The notes under the pieces were generated by a model. That model did not search any database, had not been told where the DNA came from, and saw only the letters and a program-made list of their open reading frames with translations. A program made the position numbers and the translations under genes. Below, in pieces: positions 27,563 through 61,466 of a stretch of 64,000 nucleotides of DNA (within the stretch, counting starts at the first letter, position 1; each line of letters starts with the position of its first letter). The stretch covers positions 20,410,464-20,474,463 of the forward strand of contig NC_043011.1 of the NCBI RefSeq assembly GCF_006345805.1, in the 5' to 3' direction. This stretch comes from Octopus sinensis. Lineage: Eukaryota.

Positions 27563-27655
27563 ATGCAGCCGGCTTTATCACTAGTTCTGTTCCTGGTTCT
27601 TTCGCAAGCAGACCACACACTATCTTTCTCTCAAACTTTACACATGGTTAACGTG
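27563..27655 (+). CDS. Histidine acid phosphatase (ACP2/ACP3-like), coding exon 1, signal peptide
   Basis: MQPALSLVLFLVLSQADHTLSFSQTLHMVNV followed by donor GTGAGT. It has a hydrophobic leader, and TLHMVNV parallels the SLRFVTL/ELKFVTL strand preceding RHG in vertebrate acid phosphatases. Confidence 0.85.
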
Positions 27656-27924
27656 GTGAGTATTTTTTGTGTTTTTTTTTTCGATTATAGATTGTCGTAT
27701 CTTATACATATTTTAGTCACTCGAGTGCAGCCATGCTTGGGCATCGAGTCTTAGAACTTCAGTCGAGCAAATGAAACTCAGTACTTACGTATTTTTTTTT
27801 TTTTAAAAAAGACTGGTTTCTGATTCTATCAATCTCCTCAGGCTGAACCGCTATGCTACAAACACCAACAAGCGGTGGATAGGTGGGTGGGTGACAAACA
27901 CAAAAAGAGTCATAAATATATATA

Positions 27925-28137
27925 TCTGTTTCTTAATTACCCACAAGGGGTTAAACATAGAGGGGACAGACAAGGACAGACAGACAGACGGATTAAGTCG
28001 ATTACATCGACCCCAGTACGTAACTGGTACTTGATTTATCGACCCCGAAAGAATGAAAGGCAAAGTCGACCTCGGCGGAATTTGAACTTGGAACGTAACG
28101 GCAGACGAAATACGGCTACGCATTTCGCCCGGCGTGC
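27925..28137 (-). mobile_element. SINE family B
   Basis: Central domain and head match family B. Confidence 0.8.
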
Positions 28138-28140
28138 TCA

Positions 28141-28477
28141 CATACATACATACATACACACACACACATACATACATGCATACATACATACGTACATACA
28201 TACATACACGCATACATACATCATACATACATACATACATACATACATACACGCATACATACATCATACATACATACATACATACATACATACATACATA
28301 CATACATACGTACGTACATACATACATACGTACGTACGTACATACACACATACATTCATACATACATACGTACGTACATACATACACACATACATACACA
28401 TATACATACATACATACATACATACATACATACATACATACATACATACATACATACATACATACATACATACATAC
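28141..28477. repeat. (TACA)n microsatellite
   Basis: Directly visible. Confidence 0.95.
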
Positions 28478-28619
28478 GACAGTTGAAGAATTATATGCCT
28501 TCGGCTTTAGTGTCTGACGAGTCCATGAGGCTGAGCACTTTATGGATGCAAGACCATTGGTCACTCTATGACCGGACATATACTTAGTTGCATATATATA
28601 TATATATAAAGTTAGGTAA

Positions 28620-29255
28620 GGCCGTTTATGGGATTACCCTGGGTTTCCCGTCTATAAAGCGTTTAGCTTTACGGCGTATCATCAGATCCCAAACAGGTTG
28701 GCTTATAGCCTCTCTGGAAAATGGAAGAAGAAAGGACCCCACTCCTCGACAACAGGGGACTGTCTCCCTTTGGATATTGATCCTAAGAGACCCTGTTATC
28801 TTGTGAGTTCCAACAGGCCAGCAGGAATTTCCTGAAATGCAAGCAAGAGATTTTTCATGCAGCAGCCCCCTACAATAATGAGCTGCTAGCGGATTTGGGG
28901 ACCGCATCTCCGACGTGCCGTGTCCCAACATCCGTAGAAGGAAACGTCGCAGAAATATCATATGGTTTTCCCCCGCCCCCTTCTCTCTTAACGTAAAAAC
29001 GTCTATAGGTAGAATATTCCTTCAGTTGATAGATTAGAGTTTCACACGTTCACACAGGTATGGACGCATTTTCAACAGGCACAACCTTAGGGTCTCTTTC
29101 AGTTATGTCCCCAATATTAAGAGCATTCTAGTTAGCACCTCTACACCACGAGCGGAGACAGGATGCTCATGCAAGGACCACAACAGATGCCCGGTGAGAG
29201 GCCACTGCGAAACCAAGGGAGTTGTCTATGAAGCTGAGGTACTGGCCGAGCCTTA
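28620..29255 (+). mobile_element. Penelope-like element fragment (RT C-terminus to start of GIY-YIG)
   Basis: Degenerate [32 protein letters not shown] and CSC...CPVRGHCETKGVVYEAEV, typical of the PLE linker and zinc-binding region. Confidence 0.7.
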
Positions 29256-30019
29256 TAGCAGCAGCAACACCGGCAGCACCATCGCCAGCGATAACAATAA
29301 CAACATCAAGGACAGCCGTGGCAGTGTCCCTAACGGCAGCAGCAGCATCAGCCGTTCAAGAATTTGGACCTGGAGATCTCCATTTCCAGCGACCTCGAGG
29401 GTCACCTCCCAGTGGTGTCGGGCGTCAAAGAAGAGCCCTCGACTACAACAAGACGACCAAAGTTTTTTTTTTTCCGAGGTCTGGGGTCTCCCGCCCCTAA
29501 GCCCTAGACCATCACCTAATCACCCTTACCCGTCTTGTTGCTTAACAACAACAACAACAACAGCTGCAGCAGCAGCTTCCCTCATGGTTACTATAGTAGC
29601 AGGGTCGACAGTACCAATAACAGCTGCAGCAGAGACATGAACAGAACCAGCGGCAGCACCTTCGCCAGCGATAACAGCAATAGCAACATCAACGACAGCA
29701 ATTGTAGTATGCCAAACGGAAATAGCAGCAGAGTCATCGCCAATGATATCTATAACAGCGGTGACAGCACTTCCATCAACAATGACAACAACAGCACCGT
29801 TACCAGCATCGGTAGTAACGGCACCAGTACCATCGCTCCCTCCAATGACGCCAACACCCACAACGCCAGCACCAACAACAGCGGTAGCAGCACCGCCAAC
29901 ACTCGAGTACGGAGATACATCGGTTGCTCTGGTAACAGATCAGTTTTTGCGCGACTGACGGATTTCCATCCTGCGCTCGAAAAGCGAAGGGAATACTTAT
30001 AAAGTCTGGTTGGAACTGG

Positions 30020-59365: not shown

Positions 59366-59598
59366 GTATATATCTTACCCTACATACAACTAGTGTCATA
59401 GACCAAAGTAGTAACAACATCCTAGGAATCTTGCTTTGGTATCTTTTCACCTACGACTTCTTGTGGACCCAGGAAGGTACAGGTCAAAATGCTACAATTG
59501 ACACTGTATATCTGGGATCAGATGATCATTCATACATACATACATGCATACATACGTACATACATACGTACGTACATACGTACAATGTGACCTCATGT

Positions 59599-59790
59599 GT
59601 ACCGTTGGTGATTTTTTTCCCTCTGTCTTCCCTTCTCGGGATCTTTCCTTCTCCTATGTTTCTGACAAAGAGCTCCGCTCGAAACGTTAAACCCTTCTTC
59701 CCTTCTTTCCTGAGCGTCCAATAATACTATATTTGTTCCACGTCTTCGCGTTGTTGTGTATTTTTGTGTTTTCTTGTTTGGATTAACTTT
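59599..59790 (+). mobile_element. Penelope-like solo pseudo-LTR with hammerhead remnant
   Basis: GTTT-CTGACAA-A-GAGCTCCGCTC-GAAA-CGTT-AAAC at 59658-59692. Homologous to 22961-23154. Confidence 0.65.
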
Positions 59791-59861
59791 ACATACATAC
59801 ATACATACATACATAAATGTATGTATGTATGTATGTACATACATATGTACATACATACATA

Positions 59862-60045
59862 TGGGTGTTGAAAAGTTCCTGGCGTTAGGTAAAAGAAAAT
59901 ACAGGAGGATCAGTTAATTATGATTTTATTCAATAGATTCCCCTCTTAAATTCACATACTTATGCAATGGTCCTTCAGTTTTTCTAATCCCAGGAAAAAC
60001 TTGGAAAGTTGGGCCCCCAACCAGGAACTTTTCAGAAACCCCTCG
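59862..60045. mobile_element. mariner-type MITE
   Basis: GAAAAGTTCCTGG / CCAGGAACTTTTC inverted ends with TA flanks. Confidence 0.7.
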
Positions 60046-60113
60046 TATATGCATGCATGCATACGTGTATGTATACATACATACATGCATGCAGGTATAG
60101 ATGTACACATATA

Positions 60114-61155
60114 GGCGCAGGAGTGGCTGTGTGGTAAGTGGCTTGCTTACCAGCTGCATGGTTCCGGGTTCAGTCCCACTGTGTGGCATCTTGGGCAGGT
60201 GTCTTCTGCTGTAGCCCCAGGCCGACCAATGCCTTGTGGGTGGATTTGGTGGACAGAGGCTGAGGGAGGCCTGTCGTGTATATGTATATATATATATATG
60301 TGTGTGTGTGTGTGTGTTTGTGTGTCTGTGTTTGTCCCCCTAGCATTGCTTGACAACCGATGCTGGTGTGTTTACGTCTCCGTCACTTAGCGGTTCGGCA
60401 AAAGAGACCGATAGAATAAGTACTGAGCTTACAAAGAATAAATCCCGGGGTCGATTTGCTCAACTAAAGGCGGTGCTCCAGCATGGCCGCAGTCAAATGA
60501 CTGAAACAAGTAAAAGAGTAAAGAGTATATCCATGCATGTAGACATACATTTGGTGGACAGAGGCTGAGGGAGGCCTGTCGTGTATATGTATATATATAT
60601 ATATGTGTGTGTGTGTGTGTGTTTGTGTGTCTGTGTTTGTCCCCCTAGCATTGCTTGACAACCGATGCTGGTGTGTTTACGTCTCCGTCACTTAGCGGTT
60701 CGGCAAAAGAGACCGATAGAATAAGTAACTGAGTTACAAAGAATAAATCCGGGGTCGATTTGCTCACTAAAGGCGGTTGCTCCAGCATGGCCGCAGTCAA
60801 ATGACTGAAACAAGTAAAAGAGTAAGAGTATATCCATGCATGTAGACATTACTTGGTGGACAGAGGCTGAGGGAGGCCTGTCGTGTATATGTATATATAT
60901 ATTATTGTGTGTGTGTGTGTGTGTGTTTGTGTGTCTGTGTTTGTCCCCCTAGCATTGCTTGACAACCGATGCTGGTGTGTTTACGTCTCCGTCACTTAGC
61001 GGTTCGGCAAAAGAGACCGATAGAATAAGTACTGAGCTTACAAAGAATAAATCCCGGGGTCGATTTGCTCAACTAAAGGCGGTGCTCCAGCATGGCCGCA
61101 GTCAAATGACTGAAACAAGTAAAAGAGTAAAGAGTATATCCATGCATGTAGACAT
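60114..61155 (+). repeat. SINE-A followed by two tandem re-duplications of its 3' ~300 bp
   Basis: The unit TTGGTGGACAGAGGCTGAGGGAGG...CATGCATGTAGACAT occurs three times. Confidence 0.88.
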
Positions 61156-61379
61156 ACATACAAAGAGAGAAAGATGGGACAAGGTACAGATTAAAATGTA
61201 AAGCGAAACACAAAAAGTTGATTTGTACATATTTTATTGACCAGAGAGAAGGAAATTAAAAGTTGAACACAGGATGTAACTTAATAACACAAGACAGTTT
61301 TACTACCGCTCTACTGATTTTTGCCTCTCTCTGCTCTAATTATTGTTTAAAATAATTTTTTTTTTTTTGTGTGTTTTAG

Positions 61380-61466
61380 GACTTCATCAACTTCATCAGT
61401 AACAAAACTGGAGTAGACACAAACCTCAAGAAGATTTGGATGGTAGCAGATACTCTCTCTTGCTGG
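61380..61466 (+). CDS. Histidine acid phosphatase exon 6
   Basis: TTTTGTGTGTTTTAG|DFINFISNKTGVDTNLKKIWMVADTLSCW|GTCAGT. It parallels [30 protein letters not shown]. Confidence 0.92.

Follow-up and report, generated by a model that had tools for sequence, protein, structure and literature searches.

The 64-kb stretch of Octopus sinensis DNA analyzed here (CM016873.1, about 20,410,464-20,474,463; hereafter the window) carries six short coding exons of a gene for a histidine acid phosphatase, set among many repeats (Table 1). A six-frame motif search of the window placed two motifs on the + strand, RHGDR at position 40858 and PVPRC at 47917. Exon 1 runs from ATG to AACGTG and is followed by the donor GTGAGT, and every internal exon has a pyrimidine-rich tract and AG in front and GT behind. 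All junctions are phase 0, and the six exons, when joined, give an open frame of 197 amino acids (aa). With introns 1 to 5 measuring 13196, 4774, 2102, 10055, and 3186 nucleotides (nt), coding sequence accounts for 591 of the 33,904 nt of the span (1.74%). The complete gene has 12 coding exons, occupies 47,847 nt and encodes a product of 399 aa. The window carries exons 1-6 of these 12; exon 7 starts 1,394 nt past its end, and the HD pair, H269-D270, lies outside it at the opening of exon 9. Upstream of exon 1, the TATA-like sequence TATAAAAG occurs only once in the window, and both it and the CATTGG that follows are conserved in O. sinensis, O. vulgaris, and O. bimaculoides. This box is a possible core promoter and, if it is one, the 5' untranslated region would be very short.

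Homology searches identified the family to which the joined peptide belongs. The Pfam family His_Phos_2 (PF00328) matched the 197 residues with an E-value of 6.5e-16 (59.1 bits against a Pfam cutoff of 23.6) and the full protein with an E-value of 7.5e-30 (105 bits). Structures of human prostatic acid phosphatase matched the 197 residues along their whole length (E=2e-10). An exhaustive HMMER search of 1.84 billion representative proteins returned 645 matches to the 197-aa peptide, the best of which was a 398-aa "lysosomal acid phosphatase-like isoform X1" from Argonauta hians (73% identity, E=2.4e-85). An initial word-index protein search with the same peptide had found no match; we attribute this to the low sensitivity of that search, as homologs were found by the exhaustive HMMER search and by a profile search. 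When the Argonauta ortholog was searched against the whole window by tblastn, exactly six collinear segments were returned, which are the six exons (E-values in Table 1), and nothing significant was detected outside them. With approximate human ACP2 and ACP3 sequences as queries, tblastn gave weak matches to single exons (E 0.08-0.4), and an exon 7 was not found in the window.

The profile search led to XP_029646068.1, a 399-aa Octopus sinensis protein named "lysosomal acid phosphatase isoform X1". The spliced 197 aa are identical to its first 197 residues, with exon 1 supplying residues 1-31, and the gene's locus in GCA_006345805.1 (CM016873.1) is 100% identical to positions 17563-64000 of the window. 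The gene is therefore already annotated. Literature searches turned up no publication that deals with the gene or with its accession numbers.

The original prediction, made from the sequence alone, had described a hidden six-exon gene spread through transposon debris. A gene is indeed present; it is not hidden, being represented in RefSeq, and its six exons are the window's share of 12. In other respects the prediction held in detail. The six exon lengths, the AG/GT boundaries, the uniform phase 0, and the 197-aa frame were all exact. The peptide does contain RHGDRT, PVPRC with its Arg, and all three sequons that had been named (NFS, NCS, and NKT), and the hydrophobic N-terminus, judged by eye and hydropathy, is consistent with the signal peptide that had been proposed. 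Coding sequence does make up less than 2% of the span, the HD motif and the C-terminus do lie beyond the window, the recommended comparison of the joined peptide with His_Phos_2 gave a score well above the cutoff, and the introns are rich in copies of transposable elements and in microsatellites. A reading of raw sequence alone had recovered the exact six-exon structure across 34 kb.

We conclude with high confidence that the window shows coding exons 1-6, the 5' half, of an ordinary 12-exon O. sinensis gene that is functional, is already annotated, and encodes a branch-2 histidine acid phosphatase. Nothing in it lies outside known biology: it is an ordinary member of a well-known enzyme family. 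For biology at large the gene is of little consequence, as it is a recognized member of that family and is in the RefSeq annotation already.

Table 1. Positions in the window of the gene's parts and of repeats in and around it. E-values given for exons are from tblastn with the Argonauta hians ortholog.
Feature	Position	Strand	Description
TATA-like box TATAAAAG	27520-27527	+	Putative core promoter; 43 nt 5' of ATG; then CATTGG
Coding exon 1	27563-27655	+	93 nt; ATG start; signal-peptide-like hydrophobic N-terminus; ends ...LHMVNV; E=0.16
Intron 1	27656-40851	+	13,196 nt; phase 0
Coding exon 2	40852-40938	+	87 nt; peptide LFRHGDRTATGTLPAHGQSSRDSRGHLTK; catalytic RHGDR (R34, putative nucleophile H35, R38), aligned to RHGDR of prostatic acid phosphatase; E=1e-4
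Coding exon 3	45713-45796	+	84 nt; IGTKQNLNLGSYFQSRYHGFFSSIPSNE; E=2e-11
Coding exon 4	47899-48045	+	147 nt; IKLESSPVPRC...HDDN; R98 in PVPRC; NFS sequon; E=7e-17
Coding exon 5	58101-58193	+	93 nt; NCS sequon; conserved Cys; E=3e-12
Coding exon 6	61380-61466	+	87 nt; NKT sequon; ends ...TLSCW; E=2e-10
Intron 6, first 2,534 nt of 3,927	61467-64000	+	From the exon map of the identical O. sinensis locus
Copies of a short interspersed nuclear element (SINE)	8430-8912, 14813-15208, 40138-40547 (intron 1), 52710-53115, 58260-58677, 60113-60527, others		
Tandem array	60246-61158	.	Three units of 305 bp (96% alike), each formed from a portion of the SINE; intron 5, 220 nt upstream of exon 6
Decayed non-long-terminal-repeat retrotransposon (long interspersed nuclear element, LINE)	35892-38740	+	Intron 1, sense orientation; domains split over several frames
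LINE endonuclease	36218-36664	+	Exo_endo_phos_2, E=1.3e-7
LINE reverse transcriptase	37427-38290	+	RVT_1, E=5.4e-24
Second, weaker endonuclease fragment	30175-30762		
(ACAT)n array	28140-28477		Intron 1

Intron positions and family placement

To compare gene structures, annotated proteins were mapped exactly onto their own genomic loci. The octopus gene begins with coding exons of 93, 87, 84, 147, 93, 87, 124, 89, and 193 nt, and its Argonauta hians counterpart with exons of 93, 90, 84, 150, 93, 87, 124, 89, and 193 nt. The corresponding series is 87, 99, 87, 156, 96, 90, 139, 83 in the bivalve Sinanodonta, 87, 96, 87, 153, 99, 96, 133, 92 in ACP2 of the stingray Hypanus sabinus, 90, 96, 87, 61+92, 99, 90, 84+49, 89 in ACP2 of the wrasse Labrus bergylta, and 117, 96, 87, 153, 99, 105, 142, 83 in a third vertebrate paralog of the soluble type. 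Introns 1-6 fall in identical alignment columns, all in phase 0, in all five aligned sequences (the window peptide, Argonauta, the bivalve, the stingray, and the wrasse), and the next two introns, 7 in phase 1 and 8 in phase 0, are likewise in register among the four aligned proteins that are full-length. The wrasse ACP2 has two additional introns. The exon-end residues of the third vertebrate paralog, which was mapped separately, reproduce the first eight boundaries together with their phases; this paralog stands barely nearer to human ACP3 than to ACP2, so that the comparison does not strictly extend to ACP3. The original prediction had likened the exon ends to those of vertebrate ACP2 and ACP3, and boundaries of the ACP2 type are indeed the same in position and phase in the stingray, the wrasse, and the third paralog. 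The exon structure is ancestral to bilaterians. Intron conservation of such depth is normal for metazoan genes; the present gene offers a clean, directly tested case in which intron position and phase have been kept from molluscs to vertebrates.

Protein sequence places the octopus gene at some distance from all of these relatives. It shares 32-33% identity with vertebrate ACP2/ACP3, 35-39% with other molluscan homologs, and 39% with a second O. sinensis protein (XP_029645989.1, P0006), which is named 'prostatic acid phosphatase' and is encoded on the same chromosome. In a neighbor-joining tree, the vertebrate genes formed an exclusive clade with 99.5% bootstrap support, and the octopod gene fell outside it on a long, unplaced branch, with the deeper nodes unresolved. 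It is a member of a fast-evolving octopod lineage, and its chromosome also carries the second gene, a paralog that is more conventional and membrane-anchored. Because the gene stands apart from the vertebrate clade in the tree, its name "lysosomal acid phosphatase" reflects similarity, not orthology.

That name nonetheless raises the question of whether the gene is a true ortholog of ACP2, encoding a membrane-anchored precursor that is delivered to lysosomes, a reading that we consider improbable. The exon-intron organization of the ACP2 group, with introns 1-8 in the same positions and phases, and the catalytic residues are shared with vertebrate ACP2 (XP_059831359.1 of Hypanus sabinus and XP_020506426.3 of Labrus bergylta), in keeping with the RefSeq name. 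However, the C-terminal transmembrane segment and tail of ACP2 are absent from the octopus protein. No 19-residue segment of the full protein exceeds a Kyte-Doolittle mean of 1.6, the maximum being 1.43 at the signal peptide, whereas the same measure reaches 3.0 in stingray ACP2 and 2.8 in the octopus paralog XP_029645989.1. The 3' exon structure also differs from that of ACP2 after exon 9, and the well-supported vertebrate clade, ACP2 included, excludes the octopod gene. Moreover, it is the paralog XP_029645989.1, a member of the same family, that keeps both the anchor and a conserved Trp-containing loop and that is closer to the other molluscan and the vertebrate enzymes.

The alternative that we favor is a soluble product. 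The N-terminus (MQPALSLVLFLVLSQA...) resembles a signal peptide, and the full protein contains six N-x-S/T sequons, three of which lie within the 197 aa. The hydrophobic N-terminal segment would route the protein to the secretory pathway, and the six sequons could be glycosylated there. Since there is no C-terminal hydrophobic segment, the product is most likely a soluble, glycosylated enzyme that is secreted or resides in the secretory/endolysosomal lumen, and not a membrane precursor of the ACP2 type. Such a soluble enzyme could still reach lysosomes via another route.

Catalytic residues and selection

Over residues 26-360, the full protein could be aligned with the prostatic acid phosphatases of rat and human (ACP3; PDB 1RPA, 1ND5, and 1CVI), with E-values of 4.5e-47 and about 1e-46. 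R34-H35-G36-D37-R38, R98, and H269-D270 stand opposite the catalytic residues of the mammalian enzyme, R98 of PVPRC being aligned with the Arg of the DVDRT motif and H269-D270 with the AHDTT motif. The octopus protein thus combines a score above the Pfam threshold with the features of a histidine acid phosphatase: the RHGxR His with its two Arg residues, a third Arg, and the HD pair. The two proteins belong to the same fold family, align over the whole mature enzyme, and share a conserved C-terminal Cys pair (PGCxxxCP), and the mammalian enzyme also has a soluble form. They differ in that identity is only about 32% and in the divergence of two octopus segments described below, and they are not one-to-one orthologs.

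Histidine phosphatases of branch 2 use the His of RHGxR as the residue that becomes phosphorylated, the Arg side chains to bind phosphate, and the Asp of HD as proton donor. By analogy, H35 of the octopus enzyme would attack a phosphomonoester to form a phospho-histidine intermediate, R34, R38, and R98 would hold the phosphate, and D270, encoded with H269 in exon 9, would protonate the leaving group. The octopus protein is predicted to be enzymatically active.

Several points weigh against reading the gene as an ordinary functional acid phosphatase. RefSeq XP_ models are computational predictions, and the signal peptide was called by eye and from hydropathy only. The catalytic motif reads RHGDRTA in place of the usual RHGxRxP, the trailing Pro having been replaced. 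After RHGDR, the segment W-P-Q-G-F-G-Q-L-T, which is conserved elsewhere, has become R-D-S-R-G-H-L-T, and the likewise conserved W-Q-P-I-P-V-H-T has become Q-L-L-P-I-Y-S-R-P. As these diverged segments lie near the active site, activity or substrate range could differ from those of known enzymes.

Taken further, the same divergence might point to a secreted 'acid-phosphatase-like' protein whose catalysis is altered and whose role, for instance in binding a ligand, has shifted or is no longer enzymatic. The predicted protein is soluble, fast-evolving, and lineage-specific, and it has lost the conserved Trp-containing segments. There is also precedent: some salivary family members in arthropods are described in such terms, and flea proteins among them are reported to lack one or two presumed catalytic residues (PMC10728186). 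Unlike the flea proteins as described there, however, the octopus protein keeps R34, H35, R38, R98, H269, and D270, and we give a loss or shift of catalysis little credence. A related idea is that a soluble octopod paralog with remodeled active-site loops may have acquired a specialized function outside the cell, perhaps in saliva, digestive fluid, or mucus, and may act on a range of substrates different from that of classical lysosomal or prostatic acid phosphatases. Octopods are the only animals in which this soluble and fast-evolving paralog has been observed to date, and all of its catalytic residues are kept; we put this forward as a tentative and rather doubtful suggestion.

Orthologs were found in O. 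vulgaris (CAI9736242.1), O. bimaculoides (XP_014771342.1), and Argonauta hians (GAB1605782.1). The O. vulgaris protein differs at one of the 197 residues, and the Argonauta protein is 73% identical over the same 197 aa. In O. sinensis, O. vulgaris, and Argonauta, all 12 exons keep an unbroken frame and canonical splice sites. The O. bimaculoides assembly yields 11 of them, intact and in frame; the missing one, exon 2, falls in an assembly gap. By the Nei-Gojobori method, the ratio of nonsynonymous to synonymous substitution rates (dN/dS) was 0.19 against O. bimaculoides (dS 0.115, 370 codons) and 0.09-0.10 against Argonauta, where a dS near saturation is a further point on the debit side. Repeat sequence is absent from the exons. 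Because the frame is intact, dN/dS is low, and the exons are free of repeats, the data indicate that the gene is under purifying selection and is not a pseudogene.

The opposite view, that the locus is a decaying, non-functional copy (an unprocessed pseudogene) in which the frame merely happens to be open, could appeal to the divergent motifs near the active site, the long branch in the tree, and the very large, repeat-filled introns. Set against the frame and splice sites preserved in three complete assemblies, the 11 intact O. bimaculoides exons outside the gap, a dN/dS of 0.09-0.19, the retention of every catalytic residue, and exons without repeats, it is very unlikely. Finally, although about 40 open segments bounded by AG and GT exist in the region for each exon length, a chance collection of short open frames is refuted by the E-values of the joined peptide (6.5e-16 to 2.4e-85), by an unbiased tblastn that returned only the six segments, in order, and by 100% identity of the peptide to an independent gene model; the six-exon structure is well beyond chance.

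The orthologs also exposed a fault in the annotation of O. bimaculoides. Both RefSeq models of that species, XP_014771342.1 and XP_014771343.1, lack the 29-aa exon with the catalytic RHGDR motif, and the flanks of exon 2 abut a 765-nt run of N (locus L006, 13337-14101; orthologous to positions 40778-41073 of the window). The missing exon is most simply explained as an effect of the assembly gap and not as a real isoform. The model stays in frame without it because the exons are phase 0.

Repeats and intron length

Tandem repeats make up 13.5% of the 33.9-kb span, and 38.8% of the span recurs elsewhere in the same 64-kb window, which sets a lower bound on repeat content; tandem and interspersed repeats thus account for at least 39% of the span. 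A SINE family of approximately 410 bp, which has one tRNA-like end (GGTTCCGGGTTCAGTCC) and contains a microsatellite, is represented in the window by at least 20 copies or fragments at 70-95% identity, about 10 of them in introns of the gene. No tRNA genes were detected by ARAGORN. The gene of Argonauta, in contrast, is 11.3 kb long and its introns are 0.3-2.5 kb, roughly ten times shorter than those of Octopus. The Octopus gene grew by intron expansion through SINEs, LINE fragments, and microsatellites, amounting to about a ten-fold increase in intron length relative to Argonauta.

Two further tandem repeats were observed in the introns. A 26-bp unit is present in 17.8 copies at 62786-63250 (intron 6) and a 67-bp unit in 2.7 copies at 41526-41706 (intron 2). 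The latter unit resembles the 26-bp repeat when reverse-complemented, and the two may derive from one element family.

Other remnants of mobile elements are scattered through the window. An open frame at 51749-52264 (+ strand, intron 4) had no Pfam match; it contains a GIY-YIG-like motif (LIYCIKC...LYVGQT) and possibly represents a Penelope-like element's nuclease end. Open frames on the - strand at 20303-21081, likewise without a match in Pfam, contain the reverse-transcriptase-like motifs LPKIHK and YIDD and are reminiscent of Penelope-like elements. Between 20000 and 22000, the + strand is G-rich, with a G+C content of 0.48 and a GC skew of +0.43. A hAT/ZBED-like transposase-derived fragment at 18646-19905 (- strand) shows faint matches to FAM200/ZBED1 and DUF4371 and is annotated as a 192-aa O. 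sinensis gene. At 308-1275 (- strand) lies a remnant of a pogo/Tc5-like DNA transposase, in which a DDE_1 domain (E=4e-25) adjoins HTH_Tnp_Tc5 (E=5e-7).

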